A stretch of 64,000 bases of DNA from Epithemia pelagica (lineage: Eukaryota; Protista; Bacillariophyta), in NCBI GenBank assembly GCA_946965045.2, contig OX337241.1, positions 1,116,001 to 1,180,000 on the forward strand, read 5' to 3'. Under the pieces are notes generated by a model. It was not told where the DNA came from. It was given only the letters and a program-made list of their open reading frames with translations, and made no database searches. Shown piece by piece: positions 1-12,623 of the stretch (positions within the stretch are counted from its first letter, which is position 1; each line of letters opens with the position of its first letter). A program made the position numbers and the translations under genes.

Positions 1-307
1 TAGCGAAGAGAGGCAGGCGCGCGTACGACAATGATTCAATTGTGAATGCCCGCTACTATCTATGGTTATACATCCAATGTAATTTTGGAGTAAAAGTACT
101 CGTGTAGGCTGTGAGTGTGCGAGTCTGTCTGTCTGTGTGTGTTTTCGCGAAGGGCGAGGCACGCGCATGGCGCGAGCCGTCACACCTCTACGCGCTCGTC
201 GGCCTCCACTAACCTTTGAGCTTGCCACTTTTTTTGCATGAGCGATGTGTTGTGTGTTGTGTGTTCGAGTTTTGGGTTGAACAGAAAACAGAAACCCATC
301 ATCCGTC

Positions 308-1627
308 ATGTTTCTCGCTTATGCATTATGGAATCGATCAAAAACGATCAAGAATCACGAGACAGTTTGTTCGAGAAATGGAACCTCCACCACGACAGCG
401 CCTTCTACAAAAAGGATCCATACAAAGCTACCAGCTTATCGTTACCATTCGGTTCCATCGTTTTATATTTTCGTAACCCTTGTTGGGATTTGCTGTCTTT
501 CCCATTCCTTGTGGTGGAACCGACAATGTTATCATCCTACGATGACCTACATCGAGGGGCCCATCGCCACCACAAACACACCTCAAAGAAAGCACGCAAC
601 ATCCAACTCCACCACTACGTCCAGAAAAGACAATGATACAAATCATTCCACACTTTCATCACCACATTTTTTCATCTCGAGTACAGACACAACGTTTGCA
701 CTGGTTGTTCAGGAACACAACCATGAACACAACCATTCTGTTCTCGTCACCACTAATGACACCACGAAACCAATTCATGCTATGTCGAACTTGAATAACG
801 AAGCCACTGCTCTTGCTTTACCCCTTTCGGATCCGCCAACCCTGGAAACTATATGTGAAAAAAGCAAGCACTCATTCAAGGAAGCCAGTGGTTTGGCTGT
901 GATTGTGACTGGCATGGAACGGTCCGGAACTACCATTGTCTCTCGACTCATCATGTCTCATCCAACCCTCATGGGTGGATTTGAAGGCGGTGTACTGCTG
1001 GGCTCAAGCCCGGCAGACTTTGAACACATACATCCTTTTTATGAATGGATGACGGGTCCCCAATACATGTGGAATTTGACCTCATCCCAACGAAATGAAA
1101 TGGTCCACGGGTCATCCTGTCATGCTGAAATGTACCATACGTTGCGTCAAAAGTCTCCACTCTTTTCTCAAGGTCGACAGCTCAGCAGGCACAAAATGTA
1201 TCTGGTGGATAAGACGCCCCGCTATGTTTACACCTTGCCCACAATAATGGAACGAGCACCTGAAATTCCCGTAGTGGTCATGGAACGAGATTATGAGGAA
1301 CTCGTAGAGGCCTGGGCCCGGCGCGGAGTGAATGAAACAGCCACGCAAGAAAAGCGTAACCAATTCCGGTATAATCTTGAATCTGCACAAACCTTGTATC
1401 CGGATCGTATTCATGTGGTCAACGTGACCCGTTTCTACCAAGATCCGAATCAAGTCATGTCAGAGGTGTTTACCTTTTTGAACTTGACCTGGAATGAAAC
1501 GTATCTGGGTATGGAGGCGTATAATGCCAAGCTTCCACGCAGCTTGCATCAACCGCCCTTTTCGAGTCATTATTATCCTTCGTCAAAAGAGTATAAACCG
1601 GAGAATGAACATGCCCAACCACAATGA
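308..1627 (+). CDS. Sulfotransferase-family protein, probably a type II membrane (Golgi-type) enzyme
   Basis: 439-aa ORF with the PAPS-binding loop VIVTGMERSGTT, LVDKTPRY and VHVVNVTRF-like segments. One hydrophobic stretch (SFYIFVTLVGICCL) is followed by a Thr/His-rich stem. Confidence 0.75.
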   Translation: MFLAYALWNRSKTIKNHETVCSRNGTSTTTAPSTKRIHTKLPAYRYHSVPSFYIFVTLVGICCLSHSLWWNRQCYHPTMTYIEGPIATTNTPQRKHATSNSTTTSRKDNDTNHSTLSSPHFFISSTDTTFALVVQEHNHEHNHSVLVTTNDTTKPIHAMSNLNNEATALALPLSDPPTLETICEKSKHSFKEASGLAVIVTGMERSGTTIVSRLIMSHPTLMGGFEGGVLLGSSPADFEHIHPFYEWMTGPQYMWNLTSSQRNEMVHGSSCHAEMYHTLRQKSPLFSQGRQLSRHKMYLVDKTPRYVYTLPTIMERAPEIPVVVMERDYEELVEAWARRGVNETATQEKRNQFRYNLESAQTLYPDRIHVVNVTRFYQDPNQVMSEVFTFLNLTWNETYLGMEAYNAKLPRSLHQPPFSSHYYPSSKEYKPENEHAQPQ

Positions 1628-2189
1628 ACAAGCTGCAAGGTTTCGTGGGACGAGAATGTACATTAGAACCAGGGCTTTAAATCGATTTTCATTGTGAAGT
1701 ACTCTGGTTCTGGAATTGGAGCTAGTAGGGAATGCTGCTATCTTTGCACAAATTTACAAACTCGTGGCCCTTTATAAACTAACACCAATAACTTATAATT
1801 GATCAGTCGTCGGCAACGATCGATTATTACTTCTGATTGACACAAACATCTTCCAAATTTTGCTTTCCACTACTATGCTGCTTTCTTCTCCACCCCCTTG
1901 TTCTTGACCTCCTAAACTTGCCAGTGGAGTCGGGAGATGGCTTTATCAGCTGGGATCTCGCCAACACCACCCACGTGCCACATCCATGCCGTCTCCATGT
2001 TCAGGGCCGAACGGAGAAAGTCCAAGTGGACTACGAGGGACTGGGGAAAGGTCAGGAAGGACAGCAGACTCGTGAGCAAGGCAGAGGGGGCCAACGAGTG
2101 TTGCAACCAGCCATAGTGGTTTCGATTCAGGATGCTGGTCATGCGGTGGTCATGGTGGTTGTGTCTTGAAGTAGGCAGTAGGACTTGTT

Positions 2190-2251
2190 GTGGAGGTTCC
2201 ATGTATCGAGCAAACTGTTCGGTGATGCCATATCGTTTTTGATCGATTCCA
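2190..2251 (-). repeat. 62-bp inverted diverged copy of 329-390 (sulfotransferase 5' coding region)
   Basis: The reverse complement of 2190-2251 aligns ungapped with 329-390 at 52/62 nt, including an exact 20-mer TGGAATCGATCAAAAACGAT and an exact 13-mer ATGGAACCTCCAC. Confidence 0.85.
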
Positions 2252-2560
2252 CCACATTCCATGAGCGAGAAAATGAGTGCAAAAATATGCATTCGACAAA
2301 GCCAACATATCGAGTGGTGATTATACGGCTCTCCTCCTCTCGGGCTCGGGTTGCAGTCTCGTTGAGAGATGGGTTCTGTTCTCCAAGCGAGAGATCAAAA
2401 CAAGAAAGTGTCCTTGAAAAAGTGAGCGCTCGATTTCAAGGTGTGACGGCTCGTGAGTAGCGCGAGCCGATGGATCCCGCACGCTAGCCCAGTCGGACAA
2501 TGTCAACACGCAAACAAACCCAATCTCAGAAATCTTCACGGACACAAGAAAACAAATACA

Positions 2561-3937
2561 ATGACTCCTCTTTGTAGGATGATGGCAGATTCTCTTTGCA
2601 CATCATACGGAAACACAAGACTGGATAGCCAGTGTTTACTGCAACGATTGCGATTGCTACTACTACTACAACAACGACGACGACAAGGCGTGTCGCACCC
2701 AAGACTCGGCACAAATGGTCAACGACATTGCTGCTTTGTCACCTGCAATAGTAACCCATCTTCCAATATCCGCAGTGCGAAACATGTGCATGAACGAATG
2801 ACTCAATCTCCCTCGTTCAGCGCCTCTGTCCTTCGTGCGTGGGAAGCAACTGGATTGAAAGAGCTGCTACACCACAATGAGAGAACAATGCCGTCCGATC
2901 AAGATTGTGCTGCTACCTCGTTGCTTCAAGCCCATTTGATGCAAGCATGTCATGGCGTGACGGCCGAGTTGACATTTTACGAAAAGGTTCGAGACGTTTT
3001 GGAGGCAAAAGGAAACTCGAATACCAACATGGTGCCAATGGAATCTTCACTCTTGTATGAATATGAGTCGATCCGAGCGCCTAGCTCAGCCGTTGCCTGT
3101 GTTGCCTTGTTTGGAAACTTTTTTCATACATGTCCGCTCGACCAGAGTCCTTTGCTTTCCAGCAAGACAAGGTATCACAGCGACAAGCGATTTCAAAAGC
3201 TCATGGACTTGTCGTCCTTGATTTCTGGAATTGACAACGACTTGCAATCCTACCAGAAACAAGATGATTCTGATTGGAACAGCATTACCATTCGAACCGT
3301 ATTTGGAGGCAAGACCCTAAGCAACGCCTTTGACGAGGTCTGTCAACGGCACTTTCACTTGGTACAGGCCATGAGAGCACTCGGAAGGCAGCTTCAAGAG
3401 GATTATCCCACCGACTCCAACCATATTGCCGTCTGGGTGAATATCATTCTCCCGAGTGTCCATCGTGGCTTTGTATCTTGGCAATCCCATGTCAAGCGAT
3501 ACAGGAACGAAGGTGACGATGCTACCAATGGCACGTTACTAACAGACAATCTACTAGAACGGCTTTTCCCTGGAGAGCCGTACCACCAAGTTTCACCAGA
3601 GGATGGGACCTTTCCAGGCATGAATGTGGAGTTATATCATTCACTCCATTCGAGTCTCATGGAATGGGCGGCATCTTGTCGACAAATTGGATCGACAGAT
3701 GCGGACAAGTATATTGCGGTTGCCAATCCCGCTTTGTTGGCCTTGTTGTTGTTTCCCTATTGCAATCGGGTAGCAACAGATCTCACACAAGAGGGCCACG
3801 ACGCGCTAATAGTATTTGTCAAGTTCTTTACATTTCTGGCCATTGTGGATGACATGCTCGAGAATCCCCAACTGCACGTGCCTACCAAACACGTCTTTCT
3901 TCAATGCATTGAGTCCATGACCATGGACCATCCATAA
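2561..3937 (+). CDS. Class I (microbial-type) terpene synthase-like protein with permuted motif order
   Basis: Numbering from ORF 2453: YESIR208, N262DLQSYQKQ (NSE-like), RGFVSW343QSHVKRY350 (WxxxxxRY), then FPGMNVELY..EWA..LLALLLFPY..FFTFLAIVD466DMLE (N-terminal helices plus DDxxE). The start codon is uncertain (ATG 2561 or 2798). Confidence 0.8.
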   Translation: MTPLCRMMADSLCTSYGNTRLDSQCLLQRLRLLLLLQQRRRQGVSHPRLGTNGQRHCCFVTCNSNPSSNIRSAKHVHERMTQSPSFSASVLRAWEATGLKELLHHNERTMPSDQDCAATSLLQAHLMQACHGVTAELTFYEKVRDVLEAKGNSNTNMVPMESSLLYEYESIRAPSSAVACVALFGNFFHTCPLDQSPLLSSKTRYHSDKRFQKLMDLSSLISGIDNDLQSYQKQDDSDWNSITIRTVFGGKTLSNAFDEVCQRHFHLVQAMRALGRQLQEDYPTDSNHIAVWVNIILPSVHRGFVSWQSHVKRYRNEGDDATNGTLLTDNLLERLFPGEPYHQVSPEDGTFPGMNVELYHSLHSSLMEWAASCRQIGSTDADKYIAVANPALLALLLFPYCNRVATDLTQEGHDALIVFVKFFTFLAIVDDMLENPQLHVPTKHVFLQCIESMTMDHP

Positions 3938-4120
3938 TCTACCAGAATGCAAAACAACGGGTAGTCGAACGAGAATCATCGGGTCGTGGATCAGTCGTCA
4001 TGGCTTCCCTCAAAAACCTGAGAGGCATAGAACAACCGGAGATTTTATGTCAAGTTTTGGTTGGTTCTGTGCTCTTGGCATTCGGGAGATGGTTGTTTGA
4101 ATAACCACAACTTTGAGGGA

Positions 4121-4858
4121 ATGCCGTCAATCAATAAGAGTGGATCCTTCTTCTTCAAGGCAGGCCATACCGCAAGGATAAACGCTCAACCAAGCGAACC
4201 GTTTTCTGTCTTTCTGATAGGACCGTCATCAACGGGAAAGACACATCATATTCAAGAGCTTCAAGAATCTCTCCCAGCCGTCACGAAGGGCGCTGATGTG
4301 ACCTTCCATTTTGGGATTGCCCGTGATTTTCTACAAAAGCGCGGTATCACAGGAAAGGATTTGCTGAATGACAAGAAATTACACATGGAACTACAGGAGT
4401 TTTTGGTTCATAAATACAGTGTTCTTCAGCAAGACCCAGTCAAGTGTGGTAGCACCACCACCTGCCAGAATGTGCATATGCAAGCAAGCACCAGGAATAT
4501 TCGTATTTTCGACCGCTCTGCAATCGACGCCATTGTGTATGCCAAACAATATGGTACGGACCAGGATGCCATGGCGCTGCAAGCTGGGGCAAACTTTCAG
4601 TCCTGTGTAAAGCTCTATCGCAATCCGAAAAGCTCGTTGGTGGTTTTGTTTCCTGTCATACCTCAACTCGTGAAATCCGATGGTATGCGCATCCATGGAG
4701 ATGTCGCTGAACAAAACGCCTTGTTTCGGCAATATGAAAGTACCATGAAAGACCTTGGCATTCCCTTTGTCGTCTTGGGCACAGACTTGAAGCACCGAGG
4801 CAAGTGGTTGCTGTCTCGAATTTGTTCTGGAACTGGACACGATACAGGAATCCATTGA
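4121..4858 (+). CDS. AAA_28/NadR-like P-loop kinase domain protein
   Basis: VFLIGPSSTGKT (Walker A at 4220-4243), IFDRSAIDAIVY, SDGMRI. First in-frame ATG is at 4121; the frame is open from 4031. Confidence 0.75.
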   Translation: MPSINKSGSFFFKAGHTARINAQPSEPFSVFLIGPSSTGKTHHIQELQESLPAVTKGADVTFHFGIARDFLQKRGITGKDLLNDKKLHMELQEFLVHKYSVLQQDPVKCGSTTTCQNVHMQASTRNIRIFDRSAIDAIVYAKQYGTDQDAMALQAGANFQSCVKLYRNPKSSLVVLFPVIPQLVKSDGMRIHGDVAEQNALFRQYESTMKDLGIPFVVLGTDLKHRGKWLLSRICSGTGHDTGIH

Positions 4859-4859
4859 G

Positions 4860-4949
4860 TATTCAACCAATGCTCGTTTCGGAAATTCTCATGACACAGG
4901 AAACCGTTGAGTATTCAATATTCAACCAATGCTTGTTTCGGAATTTCTC
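4860..4949. repeat. Short imperfect direct repeat (31 bp x2)
   Basis: 4860-4890 and 4919-4949 match at 29/31 nt. The repeat lies between two convergent stop codons. Confidence 0.8.
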
Positions 4950-5136
4950 TATGTAGGTGGTATCTCCTGTCAACTGTCAAGGATAGCGATGGAGGCAAGA
5001 CATGGACATCTATGGATACAACGATAAAAGGACTAAATGCACTGGACAATTCGAATACTACCTAGTTTAATGATTTTGTGTTCATCTGTTCGTGCACTTT
5101 TGTGGACTGGTGATGGATTGAGAAAGAGACACGCGT

Positions 5137-8100
5137 TTAGTGCGAACCTAAATCTGACTTGACTGTTTTCAAAATACTGTCATCTTGTGATAGCCACTCC
5201 ATCCAGAGCGAATCTCTCTGTAGCGTATCCTTGCGTCCTATGACAACTAGACCACGCTTTGCCCGTGTCCACATAACGTTCAATCGTCGGTGGTCTTTGA
5301 GGAAACCCAAGTTACTGCGGCAACGAACGGCCGAAAACAGAATGATCGTACGTTCTTGGCCTTGAAAGCCATCAACAGATCGGACATCAATCTGTGTATT
5401 CTTCAAACGATTTTGAATACATTGTACTTGACCAGAATACCCAGTGATGACTCCAATATCTTTCGGTTCGAGGTTCTTAGAATCGAGAAGACGTGATACA
5501 ATATTGACCACTTCCTCCGCTTCTACATGATTGCTCCATGTTGTTCCTATACGCTTTTCTTCTCCGTCCACGTCAACAAACGCAAGGTAATGAGTTCCGC
5601 ACCATGGAGCCTCTTTGATTGGAGCAACACTCTCCAGGCTGTGGTCAGTTCGAACCTTGTCATCGTAGAACTTCAAGGAGGAGAACTTCATCAAAGAAGG
5701 ATGCATACGATATTGAGTATTTAGCATCACGCAAGGAATGTTGCTGTCGTTTTTAAGACGTTCGAACAAACTTTCTTGAAACCCAAACTCTTTGGAAGAT
5801 TCATGCACTGTTGCCTGTAGCTGTTTGTCATCACCGATCAAGACAAAACGTGTCCTTGCCTTACATGTAGCAACTCGGGTATTGCAGCTCGTCAGCTGGC
5901 CTGCTTCATCGACTATCACAGTATTGAATTCGTTATCCTGGCGTAGCAAACCAACTCCCGACCCAGTCGCAGTTGAAAATACAACCCGAGCAGTGGTAAT
6001 AATCTTCTTCATTTCTTTCTGCTTCCATTTTTCGTCATTTTCTTTCAGCGATTCGTGGTACTCAGGAAGAAAGCGTTGCAAAGATGGCTCAACTTGGCCC
6101 GATTCCCCGACACGCACGATCAATGACTCGACGTCCTCGCGATTCAATTTGTGCAATTCGGAAATGAGCTTAGACAGAATATTGTCCACAGCCTGGTGAG
6201 TCGTTGCTGACACAAGAATTCTTTCTTCTCTCGCAAGCAACGCAAGTATGAGACCAACCACCGTAGAACTTTTTCCGACAGCAGGCGGTCCCCAAATGAG
6301 GCTTACTCGATGTTCGATCGCAGATTTGATAGCTTTCGTTTGGGACCCATTCAACTGGGTCCATTTCATTCCACTCCGTGTCTCATCATCATCAATGTCT
6401 TCTAGTGTTCCTGGTTCGACCTGCGGACGACTTGATGCTTCGAACATGACTCGGTGAGTCGTGGCGTTTCCCACCCTCCATACTTTCCAGTCCACACACT
6501 CAACCTCAAAAGGCATCAGACTCAACACCTCAATCTCTAGATGTCCTGCATCGGAAAATTGCTTGACAACGGCATGGAACGATTGGGAAGTGTAGTCTTT
6601 GTGGTTGTTCGCGGGACACATTGCACGAAAAACAAAAACATCTCCGGCACGGATTTTCTTCCAGACGACACTGTGGGAAACGTTGGGGTCAAGTGTGAGG
6701 CCAAAATTCTGTCCTTTGCGTCTCTTGACACTTGCGTAAATCATTATAGGATCTACAGATCTCTTGCCATCCAGATCTAGGCTCTTGTAGTTCTCTTCCA
6801 GCGTACATTGCAAGTCAACAAAAAGTCCCAACACCGATTTGTGTTCATCTTTGTCGAAGGAAGCAAGAACAACCTCACGAATTTCATGCACCCATTGCGA
6901 AACACATGAGGTTAGAGCTAGAAATTCAAGTGTCTCAACCCATTCGTCCGCAGATGCTTCGATGCATTTCTTTACCAATTGAATGGGAAGTTTGGATAAG
7001 TCGGTATGGTTGTGAATAGATCTCAACAAGCATTTCTTGGATTCGGGAGTATTGGGTAAGCATTCACTTATTTGGAGTGCACATGATAACTCGGGTAGTG
7101 CATCAATGTCGATGACAAGTCCTTGCATCTCGAGGAGCAATATCAACGAAACATCGACAGCTACACTGTGCATATGAAACTCTCTGCAGACTTGAATGAA
7201 CTTGTGAAGTTGTCCGTGCTCAAGATGAGGCAATTCAGTTTCCTCGTGGGCCGTTGCAAGCCTATAGAGACAAAGCACATCTTCATATTCATCAGTTTGG
7301 AGAAAATCAGCTTCCAGTTTTACATCGTAAGACCTTGGTGACCCTCCAGCTTCCTCCACTTCCGTTGTGACCACATCTTTGGTTCCAACATTGTAGTGCC
7401 TCACTTCGGGATCCTTGTCGCAGACGACATACATCTCAACACGCTGAAGTCTCCTTTTCGTGACTAGATCAAATTGTGCCTTTGCATTGTTTCCAAGTCG
7501 GCCCAAGTCAATACTAATTCTACCAAACACTTTAGCGTTGACATCGTCCATCTCATAGGGGCATGTCGACATCCAAACAAAAGTATTTCGTGGGTCTCCT
7601 GGACCTTTCATGGAGATCTGGAAAAGTTGGCCAGTTAATGCCAATTGATACTGTCCACCATGAAGACGACTAATGCTCCTGAACGAACCATTAGGATTCG
7701 TGGAGAACACGTGGACGTCTTTATGCAGTATGTTTCTCCCCTCATTGAACTGTTGCTCAAATTGTAGGCAGAGTGTCAGACGGTCGTCGACTTCGATAAC
7801 GAGTAGTTTCCTTGTAAACTGAACCAATGATGAGATAACTGAATTACCAAATGGAGCTCGATAGTCACTCTCCGAACTGTAAACGCGCTTCCAGTTGAAG
7901 GTCTCAGCAAAACGGAAAGCATCGATGTCGTGTTTCTTGAGAATATTCGACTGTAAGATCTCATTTTTAAGCAGACAGTTCAGTTGGGGACACTCTTTCA
8001 GAGCCCACACTCTTTGTGCCTCTGTAAATCCGTGTAGATCAATATGGGCCAGCAATACGCGGTCAATTTCTTCCAAGTTGTCTGAACGAGCTGTTCTCTG

Positions 8101-10068
8101 AATCAAACGCAGCATTTCGAATTGTGATATATTCTGGAAGCGGCTACTCGACGACAGAAGCCAATGCAGAAGCTGTTGAAAATCGGCCTGGTCCCCCTCA
8201 CGCTCAGAGTCCACACAATCATTTTCTGCTCGGAGAAAATCAGTTATCAGGTCGTTTGCAAGATTATCCGCATGACTGATAAGAACTTCAATGATTGATG
8301 GCTTGCTATCATGAGTTTCCTCTGGAAGTTTTTTAAGATCTGAATCAATCTCAATCGGCTGTCCGTCCACACAGCGACTGAAAAGCGCATTAAGTTTGAG
8401 TGCTTCACGACAAGTCGCACCTTTTGCTTTTACCCAATCCAGGTACAAGTTCTTGACTTGGCCAAGGGAAGCATTGTTGAACTTAGCAAAGTAGCGCACC
8501 ATATCAGAACGTTCAATCGTGTGCTCGTTTTGGGGGATTTTAGCCGGTGGATATTTGCATGGCTTGAACTCCGCTGTAGGAATAAGATCGCGATCGAAGA
8601 TGACCATAAATTCATCACCGTCTAGATCTCCACCTGACATCTCGTCAGCATGAGACCGTTGCAGACGATCATTCGTCGAGAACACAACACAGTCTACTAG
8701 ATGATGGAAATCTGGAACATCGACCAGTTTCAGCTTGCGCATATCCCCCGGATGTAGACAGGGGTTACGAGAAACTAGCACATACCCCTCGGTGAGAGTT
8801 AGTGGTAACCCTTCAACAGTGACACGGACGAAGATTTCATCGGTCCTAAGCTTTCTTTCAGGTTCTGCCACCCCCAAAAGGAGGCGTGATTCCGGAAGAA
8901 GAATTCGGACCTTCCGGTTATTTCTCTTGTCAAACGTTTTCTTCAGCTCTCTTTTGACGGCTCCTCGTACCTCGCATCGGGTTGCCCGGAGTCCTTTGTC
9001 CACAAGTTTCTGCATAGCTGGAAACGCTTCTTGGTACGCAAGTAACTGAAACGCAGCTTCAGGGTCCGTAAAGGCCGAGCGAAGAAACTCAAAATGGTTC
9101 TCCTGTTTGGTCAAGAGCGTTTCCTGAGATATTCCCATCTCGGAAAGAAGAGTGACATACTCAGCATTCAGTGCACCAAACGAGTACGGCCTCGAAGCTT
9201 TGATAACGCCAAAAGATGTACTTGAGGATCCTTTGAATTTGCGCATGGAGGGGCGACATTGGACCAAAACGCCTTGTGGTATGTCCTTGTGAAGTGCCAA
9301 CACACCTTTGTAGCCTTGGTACCGAAATTGAATCACACTTGGGTGGTATCTTTCGCCTCGAAACACCACAGGGCTCCAAGACTCATTTTTCGGAATACGC
9401 TTCACAAGCTCTTTGGACATGAGACCACAGCCATCCGTCAGTAACTCTCCCGAGGACGTTAGAATATCATCGATTTCTTGAACTCGATCAGCGTTGACAG
9501 TGATATTGGTCTTTGTTTCAGAAAACAGGAGGGCAATCCGCTTTGTCATTTTCGCGCATGTTTTCATATCGAAATCGCCCATCGCATTGATCAAGGACGT
9601 GATCTCATCGGGGGATCGATTGAGGAGGTAAGCTTTGCCATCCTTTAAACCCGAATTACTGCATCCATAAAAGTGGAAGTGATCAGACCCTGAGAAAAGC
9701 TGTACACCCCACTTCAGCACCCTTTCCTTGAACTGGGATTTTGCTTTGGGTCCCATGTTCTCTCCGTCCCCAAAGCTAAGTTTGATAACTTCATGTGGTT
9801 TCAAGCCTTGAAAAGCACGGCATGAGGGCAATTCGTCGAAAAACTCAACTTTGGGAGGATCATTTGGCGCCGTTAAACTGAACGTCACGAAACGATTCTT
9901 TTGCCGTATGATGCTCAAGTCTTGTCGGCTCAACCCCTCAATCATGAATGGTGGTGGTGGTGGCTTGCGCTTTCCTTGTTTTGGGCGCCAGGAGTTGTTT
10001 CTATGAGACGATTGGTCTCTTGGATTTCGTGCCCGTGGCTTTGCGGATCGAGAGGTTGTTCGTACCAT
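5137..10068 (-). CDS. Cellular RNA-dependent RNA polymerase (RDR/QDE-1 family) fused to a C-terminal SF1 Upf1-like helicase
   Basis: Uninterrupted 1643-aa ORF. RdRP motifs: TDGCGLMS, QFRYQGYKG, RNPCLHPGD, SGGDLDGD (DLDGD at 8614-8628). Helicase motifs: GPPAVGKS, VIVDEAGQ, GDDKQL, SLFERL, LNTQYRMHP, VDGFQGQE, RRLNVMWTRAK. Confidence 0.95.
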   Translation of the reverse strand: MVRTTSRSAKPRARNPRDQSSHRNNSWRPKQGKRKPPPPPFMIEGLSRQDLSIIRQKNRFVTFSLTAPNDPPKVEFFDELPSCRAFQGLKPHEVIKLSFGDGENMGPKAKSQFKERVLKWGVQLFSGSDHFHFYGCSNSGLKDGKAYLLNRSPDEITSLINAMGDFDMKTCAKMTKRIALLFSETKTNITVNADRVQEIDDILTSSGELLTDGCGLMSKELVKRIPKNESWSPVVFRGERYHPSVIQFRYQGYKGVLALHKDIPQGVLVQCRPSMRKFKGSSSTSFGVIKASRPYSFGALNAEYVTLLSEMGISQETLLTKQENHFEFLRSAFTDPEAAFQLLAYQEAFPAMQKLVDKGLRATRCEVRGAVKRELKKTFDKRNNRKVRILLPESRLLLGVAEPERKLRTDEIFVRVTVEGLPLTLTEGYVLVSRNPCLHPGDMRKLKLVDVPDFHHLVDCVVFSTNDRLQRSHADEMSGGDLDGDEFMVIFDRDLIPTAEFKPCKYPPAKIPQNEHTIERSDMVRYFAKFNNASLGQVKNLYLDWVKAKGATCREALKLNALFSRCVDGQPIEIDSDLKKLPEETHDSKPSIIEVLISHADNLANDLITDFLRAENDCVDSEREGDQADFQQLLHWLLSSSSRFQNISQFEMLRLIQRTARSDNLEEIDRVLLAHIDLHGFTEAQRVWALKECPQLNCLLKNEILQSNILKKHDIDAFRFAETFNWKRVYSSESDYRAPFGNSVISSLVQFTRKLLVIEVDDRLTLCLQFEQQFNEGRNILHKDVHVFSTNPNGSFRSISRLHGGQYQLALTGQLFQISMKGPGDPRNTFVWMSTCPYEMDDVNAKVFGRISIDLGRLGNNAKAQFDLVTKRRLQRVEMYVVCDKDPEVRHYNVGTKDVVTTEVEEAGGSPRSYDVKLEADFLQTDEYEDVLCLYRLATAHEETELPHLEHGQLHKFIQVCREFHMHSVAVDVSLILLLEMQGLVIDIDALPELSCALQISECLPNTPESKKCLLRSIHNHTDLSKLPIQLVKKCIEASADEWVETLEFLALTSCVSQWVHEIREVVLASFDKDEHKSVLGLFVDLQCTLEENYKSLDLDGKRSVDPIMIYASVKRRKGQNFGLTLDPNVSHSVVWKKIRAGDVFVFRAMCPANNHKDYTSQSFHAVVKQFSDAGHLEIEVLSLMPFEVECVDWKVWRVGNATTHRVMFEASSRPQVEPGTLEDIDDDETRSGMKWTQLNGSQTKAIKSAIEHRVSLIWGPPAVGKSSTVVGLILALLAREERILVSATTHQAVDNILSKLISELHKLNREDVESLIVRVGESGQVEPSLQRFLPEYHESLKENDEKWKQKEMKKIITTARVVFSTATGSGVGLLRQDNEFNTVIVDEAGQLTSCNTRVATCKARTRFVLIGDDKQLQATVHESSKEFGFQESLFERLKNDSNIPCVMLNTQYRMHPSLMKFSSLKFYDDKVRTDHSLESVAPIKEAPWCGTHYLAFVDVDGEEKRIGTTWSNHVEAEEVVNIVSRLLDSKNLEPKDIGVITGYSGQVQCIQNRLKNTQIDVRSVDGFQGQERTIILFSAVRCRSNLGFLKDHRRLNVMWTRAKRGLVVIGRKDTLQRDSLWMEWLSQDDSILKTVKSDLGSH

Positions 10069-10390
10069 GCTAGCAAGGGTTAATCGAGATGTTTCGTCAA
10101 TGATGGTCTTGATATGGTTTGAGAAAACTGTGCCGTTGTTGGATCACCCGTCTCATAGAAGGGAGTCCGGTTTACGTACTTGAGTGTGTGTCCAACCAAA
10201 GAACGGCATAAAATGTGGCGGATCAAGATTGAAAGTTCACCGAAAAACGCGAAAAATACCACCAACCAGATGGCGAATTAAAATCATCTTGAATCGATCT
10301 GGCGCGCATCGTAGAGCTGTCACGGTTTCGATTGGATGTGACAGGAAAGACTTTTCATCCATTAAGGATGAAAAGTAGAAAGCCAATACC

Positions 10391-12623
10391 ATGGTCCTGA
10401 CAATCCTTTCGGCGACATGGACCAGCGCTGAAAGTGCTGTGGCATTGTCACACGTTACAACAATCTTGGAATCTGCAATGTGCGTGTCGTTGTTCCTGCT
10501 GTGGCTGCCCTGGGCGCACAAGATAGCCTGGTTCTACTACCGCATGGTGGTGGATTCCTATCTCTTTTCCTTTCGAACCGTGTCCGAGGTAGCGGATCGA
10601 GCCTGTCAGGAAGAAACAAGCAATCAGCCCGTCATTCGATTCCCCTATGGACAACGAACGATTGTGTTTTCGAACAAGGACGACGTCGCTTACATTCTTT
10701 CCAATCCCAAGGTGAACAAAAACTACCGAACACGATTTGCCACAGACTTTGGACTCAACATGTTGGGAATGAACAAATCTGGCTTGATCTGGAACAATGA
10801 TTTGGGATCATGGCAAAGCGTCCGCCGGTGCTTTGATCATACCTTGAGTACCAGCACTCTCAACAGGCTCCAGAGCTTTGTCCAAGATCAATTTCCAAAG
10901 ATACTCGATAAAATGCCTCGCGACGAGAATGGAGGGACCATTGACATGTTGGATGCGCTTCGATGGATGACCCTCAACATCACTCTCGATATGATGCTCG
11001 GCTTGCCTGTTGTGGATGAGTGGAACAAGGCTCAAGGAATTCTTGAAGCTATCGTTACCTTTTTCAAAGCCTGGGAGTTCTTTTTGGTTCGTCCATATCT
11101 TGTGTCCGTGCTTCGACCCGGATACCAAAAGCATGCCATGGCAAGGTAGGTTGCTTCTGGACCACGATCATGAGGTCAGCAGACAAGCTGACTCACAACT
11201 ATTTGTTGATTGACCTGTCGTCGGGTTTTCATTCTTGTACAGTCGCCGATTGCATGAGATTAGTGAAGGCTTGTTGTCGGATTACGAAAGACAACGCGAG
11301 CAACATCCCGAGAAAAAGTCACCCTTGTTGGACAAGGCCATGGAAAATACAGAACTTGCTCGAAGCGATCTCGTGCAATTGGTACTGGAATCCTTGTTGG
11401 CTGGAGTGGACACTTCCTCGGTATCGCTGTTTTACACGTTGAGTTTTTTGTCGCAAACCGAGAATCGCGATTTGCTTCGGCAGGCGGTGGAGGAGGTTGA
11501 CACCTTTGTCCACCAAGGCGACAAGATTAAAGCCATGTCCTTGCCGTTCATCCGAGCATGTATCAAGGAAGCCATGAGACTCAAACCTGTCGGACCCATT
11601 ATAATGCGCAAGGCAGCCCAACAGGACAACGTAGGCACCACTATCATCCAGCCCGGCGATTCGATTATTCTGAACCTGGCCCAAATGAATCTCAAGGGTG
11701 TGGATACCACATACGACCCGACTCGGTTCTTGAATGAGGAGGGCCAGCATACACCCGACGCCCAGTTACCCTTTGGATACTTTCCATTTGGCGATGGTCC
11801 CAAAGGATGTGTCGGGAAACACTTTGCCATGTGGGAAATGCAAGCCATGATGCTCGTGCTCTTGTCCCAGTACAGGGTTGATAAAGCAACGTGTTCGGCT
11901 CCGACCAGTGCCATGGTGACGCATTGGGATATTGCGAACCAACCACAATGCAAGGAGGATTCCCAAATGTCCATTGCTCGTCGAAACAACGTGTTTTTGA
12001 TTGGTCCTTCCAGCACTGGGAAAACGACCTTGCTCGAACAACTGCGCAAACAATGGGGGAATACTTCGGCCATTCACTTTCATGAAGAAACGGCACGGCA
12101 GGTATTGAACCAAAAGGGCCTAACGGGTCGTGATTTGATCCAGAATAAAGTGCTTCACATGGAATTACAGCAAGAATTGTTGCAGATGGAATATGCATCG
12201 TTGGAAGACAAGGCACGTCCTGGTACTTTTCACATTTCCGATCGATCGGTGATTGACGCCTTGGTGTATACCAAAGCGCATGGGACGCCCGTAGATGTCG
12301 AGACCTTTAGGAATATGCCCACCTTTCAAGCCTGTGTAGACCTGTATCGCCAGAATTCGTACATGATCCTCTTTCCAGTCCATACCGTGTTGCACGACGA
12401 CGGTATGCGTATCTTGGGCACTCGACAAGAAGAGGAAACATTTTTTGACCTCTTTGAAACAACCTTGCAAGAGCTCCACATTCCCTACCTGGTCCTGGAC
12501 AAGAACTGGGATACGCGTTGTGAGGACGTCTTGCGTCACATTTCATCTTGGTTGGATCATGGCACGAAACATGTGGAAGACGAACTGGCAACCAGGACGA
12601 CCAAGCCTGAAAGCAAGGAATAA
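10391..12623 (+). CDS. Cytochrome P450 (aromatase/CYP19-like) fused to a C-terminal AAA_28 P-loop domain; join(10391..11145,11243..12623), 711 aa
   Basis: A 97-nt GT..AG intron (11146-11242, CTGAC branch-like site) keeps the frame. P450 motifs: WxxxR (WQSVR), I-helix LAGVDTS, ExxR (EAMR), heme loop PFGDGPKGCVG. The same ORF continues into VFLIGPSSTGKT (12003-12026), ISDRSVIDALVY and DDGMR. Confidence 0.92.

Follow-up and report, generated by a model that had tools for sequence, protein, structure and literature searches.

Class I terpene synthases (TPSs) hold three Mg2+ ions and the diphosphate of their substrate with an Asp-rich motif and the NSE triad, and a sensor Arg and an RY pair close the site, after which ionisation starts the carbocation cascade. 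The fold is among the most studied enzyme scaffolds, and the order of its motifs serves as a defining rule in genome mining. Canonical microbial members, e.g., 10-epi-cubebol synthase (7ZRN), 1-epi-cubenol synthase (9HQ2), selinadiene synthase (4OKM) and a Streptomyces type I diterpene synthase (9M25), belong to Pfam family PF19086. Here we describe a gene from the diatom Epithemia pelagica (contig OX337241.1, positions 1,116,001 to 1,180,000; this stretch of 64,000 nucleotides (nt) is the window in which all coordinates are given) that resembles these enzymes in that its product is predicted to form one alpha-helical domain and has counterparts of their four motifs, the NSE triad ending in Gln, but in a rotated order. 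We interpret the gene, with a probability of about 0.82, as coding for a TPS of the class I alpha fold (ionisation-type, microbial-like) that has been circularly permuted in nature and belongs to a conserved family of marine eukaryotes, mostly diatoms.

Natural circular permutations occur elsewhere, e.g., in swaposins, some DNA methyltransferases and lectins, and are usually explained by duplication, fusion and trimming. For the class I terpenoid synthase fold we know of no natural case. The portions of the full-text literature that were covered, including a TPS review and a structure-based genome-mining study, mentioned no permuted TPS, most subscription journals lying outside this scope. The permutation had been proposed in an initial annotation made from the sequence of the window, and the analyses reported here follow up that proposal.

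Order of the catalytic motifs

The TPS gene (2561–3937, +) was delimited from its first ATG to its stop using the listing of open reading frames (ORFs) and the sequence. It lies in a single open frame of 494 codons (2453–3937, +), in whose numbering all residues are given, with the first ATG at 2561 and the stop at 3935–3937. A regular-expression scan found the sensor Arg208, the NSE-type N262, W343xxxxxRY350 and D466DxxE470 in this order along the chain, with no second DDxx[DE] anywhere in the TPS protein, and the stop falls 24 codons past the DDxxE. Canonical enzymes follow the order DDxxD-Arg-NSE-RY, whereas the order here is Arg-NSE-RY-DDxxE, and it is this feature that makes the variant a permuted one. 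The initial annotation had read the chain in the same way, and the residues that it named (R208, N262–Q270, W343–Y350, a linker, D466–E470 and a stop 24 codons further on) are all present in the sequence as claimed, including a Gln where the NSE motif would end in Glu.

Arg208 (3074–3076, +) stands in YESIR, a Y-x-x-x-R pattern conserved in the family, and from what is known of canonical TPSs it is a candidate diphosphate-sensor Arg. The NSE Asn follows it after 54 residues here and after 44 in the Amphora homologue, the difference being a 10-residue insertion in the diatom gene of the window. The NSE-type metal-binding motif, N262-D-L-Q-S266-Y-Q-K-Q270 (3236–3262, +), retains N262 and S266 of the triad; the last ligand position is Q270 (CAA, 3260–3262), both in this gene and in the second genomic copy described below. 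Relatives carry Asp or Glu at this position, e.g., NDIQSYQKE in the closest relative (P0040), which aligns residue for residue with N262–Q270, and the Gln is specific to the copies in this genome. Such a change from Glu to Gln may weaken one metal site, reducing activity or altering the chemistry. The two remaining motifs, W343QSHVKRY350 (WxxxxxRY, with the pair R349-Y350; 3479–3502, +) and the C-terminal Asp-rich D466-D467-M-L-E470 (DDxxE; 3848–3862, +), align to the W...RY of solved and canonical TPSs and to the DDxxD/E of solved TPSs, respectively. In canonical enzymes it is the WxxxxxRY that is found close to the C-terminus.

This order of R, NSE, WxxxxxRY and DDxxE was found in every protein of the permuted family that was long enough, whereas canonical matches have DDxxD first. 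Since the order is invariant in ~13 full-length relatives, and the D, D and E of the DDxxE are invariant across a 17-sequence alignment of tails, it is not a chance pattern.

Homology of the two parts to canonical synthases

Profile comparisons show both parts of the protein, at the level of sequence, to be homologous to complementary parts of canonical TPSs in swapped order. The head (residues 116–350; 2798–3502, +) corresponds to canonical residues ~110–340, i.e., the helices that follow the Asp-rich helix through to the RY helix. A single-sequence Pfam scan placed residues 201–301 on positions 100–194 of the 199-position profile PF19086 (Terpene_syn_C_2) with an E of 1.8e-6, above the curated cut-off. 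When a profile of the family was compared with PDB sequences, residues ~208–326 of bacterial and fungal class I synthases were matched with NSE and W...RY in register, and Arg208 and W343...R349-Y350 both aligned to the same motifs of solved TPSs. For hhalign, 14 members of the permuted family and 16 canonical synthases from the representative search were aligned separately. Two separate alignments emerged from their comparison, one of which placed the head (query 49–264) on canonical 150–340 with a probability of 99.8% and an E of 7e-28; a second comparison placed the head on canonical 130–341 with an E of 2e-29. Structural comparison of the model described below with 48,161 PDB representatives using VIA-align gave class I TPSs in all of the best 50 matches listed, the best of which (Z 17.1, root-mean-square deviation 3.0 Å, 195 residues) aligned model residues 9–241 (protein 118–350) to chain residues 116–337.

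The tail (residues 392–494; 3626–3934, +) corresponds to canonical ~31–113 plus ~20 more residues, and is made up of the canonical first helices, the Asp-rich helix and then one further helix. In the same hhalign run that gave the head its E of 7e-28, the second alignment placed the tail (query 286–380) on canonical 31–113 with a probability of 94.5% and an E of 8e-8, so that the W...GL helix falls on the first helix of canonical enzymes and the hydrophobic stretch that ends with DDxxE on their Asp-rich helix. Compared alone, the tail aligned 82 columns on canonical 32–113 (probability 96%, E 4e-9), whereas the controls, a reversed tail and 20 column-shuffled tails, gave E ≥ 0.03. Furthermore, a tail-only profile of 17 sequences, compared with 177,635 distinct PDB sequences, produced 15 matches at E ≤ 10, and 14 of the 15 were class I TPSs, matched at chain residues ~12–142 with their DDxxD/E over the DDxxE of the tail (best 7ZRN, E 2.3e-4). 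Single-sequence Pfam scans of the tail gave no match, and only profiles detect it.

Head and tail jointly span canonical ~31–341 with neither overlap nor gap, and the new termini lie ~25 residues past the Asp-rich motif. This agrees with the initial annotation, which had placed the cut just after helix D and described the two pieces as complementary halves of one fold, the head here being canonical ~115–341 and the tail, with the Asp-rich motif, ~31–113. Its expectation that each half would match terpene synthase profiles separately was borne out for the head by both Pfam and hhalign and for the tail by hhalign and the tail profile, but not for the tail by single-sequence Pfam.

Between the two parts lies a new connector (residues 351–391; 3503–3625, +), defined from family alignments and model confidence, that bridges the former C- and N-termini. 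It contains LFPGEPYHQVSPEDGTFPGMN and consists, across the family, of a variable part followed by the conserved LFPxEPYHxVxEDGTFxGMN. The confidence of the model, given as the predicted local distance difference test (pLDDT), is <50 at model residues 244–252 and 90–92 at 261–280.

Predicted structure of the whole chain

An AlphaFold2 model of 385 residues was all-helical, with a mean pLDDT of 85.7 and a predicted template modelling score (pTM) of 0.88. The tail reached a pLDDT of ~91 in the context of the full chain as opposed to 75 when folded alone, and this difference and the pTM indicate a prediction in which tail and head pack together as one confident helical domain. Modelled alone (pLDDT 74.9), the tail gave weak structural matches (Z 5–6.5, within the noise of helical bundles); about half of its best 30 VIA-align matches were TPSs, all at the N-terminal ~100 residues, with Z within noise.

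Foldseek searches with the full model gave only partial matches, with template modelling scores of ≤ 0.34 on the PDB and ≤ 0.57 on AFDB clusters, and a full-model search of the ESM Atlas gave no useful match. Failure of sequential aligners on the full model is what a permutation predicts, and it carries no information on whether a full-length twin exists. The match to the class I fold is non-sequential, i.e., the topology is permuted.

Relatives and genomic copies

A word-based search returned two relatives that are 31% identical and share the motif order and the end point, one from Amphora coffeiformis (EukProt) and one a metagenome protein in ENA. A profile search of 1.84 billion representatives gave 38 proteins at E ≤ 0.001 (17/38 at E ≤ 1e-10), among them the full-length collinear members P0004–7, P0010, P0015 and P0016; lower-scoring canonical synthases matched only profile positions ~74–214, with their own residues ~180–330. 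P0008 (2982 aa, matched in 18 stretches) was rejected as a spurious match to a repeat protein. In total, ~13 full-length relatives have the permuted order, at 20–35% identity. They come from Amphora, Attheya sp. CCMP212, MMETSP transcripts marked complete, GOS and Tara Oceans scaffolds, the last of which are taken as eukaryotic because of their EF-hand and HMG-box neighbours. In two transcript-sized contigs of relatives the ORF is complete, is flanked by short untranslated ends and stops immediately past the last helix.

The permuted arrangement is conserved and under purifying selection. The 1.36-Mb contig that contains the gene also carries, 31.7 kb away, a second genomic copy (P0070) with the same orientation and 98% identity; the two copies differ at 14 synonymous and 12 non-synonymous nucleotides, with a ratio of non-synonymous to synonymous change (pN/pS) of roughly 0.25, and both frames are open. 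The order is kept across several genera and in two genomic copies, and is therefore not the product of misassembly, a possibility that had been raised with the initial annotation.

A third copy is present on a 122.8-kb contig of the same assembly, where it is divided into two ORFs (P0069 and P0071) by a frame break near codons 224–250, past which it is 100% identical to the protein of the window. It is probably the other haplotype, and the break could mean either that the allele is null or that the long reads carried an indel error.

In a tree of the shared NSE-containing region, in which the automatic motif picker misplaced the excerpt of two rows, all permuted proteins fall on one side of a branch, beside a synthase from Ganoderma. 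One Tara eukaryotic scaffold (L006) carries a permuted TPS (4569–5585, +) head to head with a divergent TPS-like gene of canonical order (3495–4439, −), which has an Asp-rich run near residue 104 and NDYSSYKKE at 232. This neighbour was considered as a duplication intermediate and rejected as too distant, with no closeness to the permuted TPS detectable by BLASTP. At the locus of the relative P0040 (L001), no Pfam domain was found in the downstream ORFs.

Gene model and transcription

The conserved domain starts near codon 116–128 and relatives align from residue ~128, and the true start may be the ATG at 2561, at 2579/2582 or at 2798. Contig depth in one public run (X3) was 0 over 1500–2547, 11–45 over 2571–5016 and about 2 in the intergenic region beyond, and reached 264 over the gene next to the pair formed by the TPS and the downstream ORF, which encodes an AAA_28 domain. 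The contigs over 2571–5016, which cover the TPS, the spacer and the AAA_28 ORF, were continuous and without joints. From this RNA-like coverage the TPS gene appears to be expressed.

An upstream exon that would supply a DDxxD was rejected, since the X3 contigs had no depth before 2571 and no joints, and we added none to the gene model; it is also disfavoured by the relatives, which start ~20 residues before the conserved head. The spacer between the TPS stop and the AAA_28 ORF (3938–4121, +) is regarded as non-coding, since its 184 nt contain 4 in-frame stops and differ between the two genomic copies by frame-breaking indels of 1 nt and 10 nt, and the contigs show no splice joint across it. 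As the spacer is non-coding, the TPS and the downstream AAA_28 domain do not form a fusion. A spliced same-frame fusion of the two was rejected on the same stops and indels and the absence of joints in the contigs; moreover, the candidate donors would remove the conserved last helix, and relatives terminate at the same point. The initial annotation had held that there is neither a DDxxD upstream nor a second C-half downstream, and the jointless contigs, the non-coding spacer and the start and stop shared with transcriptome relatives all uphold it. Given the continuous X3 coverage, it is suggested that the TPS and AAA_28 ORFs lie on one transcript or on overlapping transcripts.

Trinucleotide repeats (CTA/CAA/CGA) at 2640–2700 encode LLLLLQQRRRQ in the N-terminal extension, and the contigs of two runs break within this repeat, with loose ends at 2657 and 2688. 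Differences that could be taken for allelic in the runs, i.e., single-nucleotide polymorphisms and a 10-nt insertion, mostly equal the second genomic copy and were discounted as alleles. One run (X5) has a 4-nt GATC insertion at 4142, which is absent from the second genomic copy and would lie 20 nt into the AAA_28 ORF if this starts at the ATG at 4122; since it shifts the frame, either the AAA_28 start is elsewhere or the copy in that strain is broken.

Genomic neighbourhood

Directly downstream of the TPS lies a gene for a NadR-kinase-like P-loop protein of the AAA_28 family (4122–4858, +; Pfam PF13521, E 9e-15), whose P-loop begins ~270 nt past the TPS stop. A second AAA_28 domain is fused in frame, within one ORF, to the C-terminal half of a cytochrome P450 (11235–12623, +; Pfam p450 E 2.6e-36, AAA_28 E 1.3e-21), and this fusion is a possible pathway partner of the TPS. 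The free AAA_28 domain (4122–4858) and the fused one (11940–12620) are paralogous at 38% identity, and the pairing of AAA_28 with both of the pathway-type enzymes, the TPS and the P450, is odd.

Between the TPS/AAA_28 pair and the P450 lies an intronless ORF of 1643 codons (5137–10068, −) with an RNA-dependent RNA polymerase (RdRP) and a superfamily 1 (SF1) helicase, over which the RNA-like depth of 264 is far above that of its neighbours. Directly upstream of the TPS is a Sulfotransfer_3 gene (308–1627, +; E 7e-16), whose 3' end had no depth in run X3. The neighbourhood belongs to a segment of at least 20 kb that is duplicated in direct orientation, and window positions 1–12623 and positions 1–21485 of the second locus (L008) share the sulfotransferase, the permuted TPS, AAA_28, the RdRP/helicase and the P450. 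In the second locus the RdRP-helicase appears in the gene calls as separate ORFs of 519 and 993 aa, and upstream there are two Cas1_AcylT acyltransferase ORFs and an additional sulfotransferase.

Discussion

As a permutant of this kind, the chain would begin at a point which in canonical enzymes lies ~25 residues beyond the Asp-rich helix, run through the helices with R208, with N262, S266 and Q270 of the NSE triad and with R349 and Y350 of the RY pair, pass by way of a conserved connector of ~40 residues into what are normally the first helices, and end with the D466-D467-x-x-E470 helix and one helix more. By analogy with canonical TPSs, the DDxxE of the folded protein would face the NSE motif, where the two would bind the Mg2+ cluster and a prenyl diphosphate, and the enzyme would ionise and cyclise its substrate as they do. 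We consider a single permutation event probable, and the simplest route to it would be a tandem duplication whose two copies fused and then lost their outer ends. The data are compatible with one origin, and no tandem two-domain intermediate was found in this analysis.

Among the alternatives, an artefact of assembly or gene model, with gene fragments misordered or an exon left out, is hardly credible. The public-run contigs are fragmented over the gene and the third copy on the 122.8-kb contig is split into two ORFs, as such an artefact might produce, but the ORF is one uninterrupted frame, the contigs over the gene have no joints and the same order recurs in two genomic copies, Amphora, Attheya, 'complete' MMETSP transcripts and Tara scaffolds. 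It is also very improbable that there was no true permutation and that a TPS, shortened by its N-terminal third, acquired an unrelated helical extension at the C-terminus with a convergent DDxxE. The empty single-sequence Pfam scans of the tail and its weak structural matches when modelled alone would suit such an origin; against it stand the 82 tail columns on canonical 32–113 (E 4e-9) in a comparison where the controls fail, the almost exclusive selection of TPS N-termini from the whole PDB by the tail profile, with the W...GL and Asp-rich helices in register, and the coverage of canonical ~31–341 by head and tail without overlap or gap.

The fold might, alternatively, be permuted in a protein that is no terpene cyclase, either because it is a prenyltransferase-type enzyme like DabA, the domoic-acid N-prenyltransferase of Pseudo-nitzschia, or because the copy here is weakened or non-catalytic. 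We consider this unlikely. Q270 replaces a conserved D/E in both genomic copies, the tail differences between these copies are more often non-synonymous than synonymous, DabA is a diatom N-prenyltransferase on a TPS fold that matches at Z 12.6, and the kinase-like, P450 and sulfotransferase neighbours fit many kinds of pathway. However, the protein keeps the DDxxE, the N and S of the triad, the sensor Arg and the RY pair, the relatives have a complete NSE, the overall pN/pS between copies is ~0.25 and the gene appears to be expressed, and DabA is no nearer than ordinary cyclases and was not recovered by sequence.

Several points also weigh against interpreting the gene as a conserved circular permutant of a class I TPS. 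With a Gln at the last NSE position in both copies, the protein may be impaired or perform a different chemistry. The alignment given to AlphaFold2 was shallow, at 14 family sequences, and the structural claim for the tail is drawn from pTM, pLDDT and weak tail-only matches (Z ≤ 6.5, in the noise range). The record of run X3 is silent on whether it is RNA, which we infer from the depth profile, and the monophyly of the permuted group has a support of 66/48.

A conserved natural permutant would mean that the class I fold tolerates new termini ~25 residues past the Asp-rich motif. As a result of the permutation, such proteins resemble half-synthases to Pfam and are hence missed or mis-annotated. 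Their recognition would reveal a TPS family in diatoms, a group in which little is known of terpenoid cyclases, and would provide both a natural template for the engineering of permuted or split TPSs and a test case for the duplication-fusion-trimming model of permutation. More tentatively, and at slightly under even odds, we propose that this is a catalytically active permuted class I TPS family, the first natural one, confined to diatoms and other marine microbial eukaryotes; in the present genome it would stand in a duplicated neighbourhood whose P450-kinase fusions, free kinase-like gene, sulfotransferases and acyltransferases could together make an oxidised, sulfated or phosphorylated terpenoid.

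The nearest known systems are the canonical TPSs, on whose chain residues ~110–340 the head superposes at Z 14–17 and to whose residues ~31–117 the tail aligns by profile. The protein of the window differs from them in its rotated order, with the first ~110 canonical residues placed last and a connector of ~40 residues added, and in the Gln that replaces the last NSE Glu in the copies of this genome. By sequence, the nearest canonical enzyme in the tree of the NSE region is a TPS of the basidiomycete Ganoderma (P0020/PIL25567.1; grouping 82/87), which also served as an hhalign template; it differs in being fungal, in having the canonical order and in sharing only ~22% identity over the aligned head. 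DabA (PDB 6VKZ) is, like the permuted protein, from a diatom and has a class I TPS fold, its C-terminal part being matched at Z 12.6, but it is of canonical order, the head of our model aligning to DabA chain 238–461, and it gave no sequence-level match in searches of PDB sequences with the family or tail-only profiles. As regards the kind of event, the closest parallels are the swaposins, methyltransferases and lectins, in which, as proposed here, the old termini were joined and new termini opened, and the fold and active-site residues were kept.

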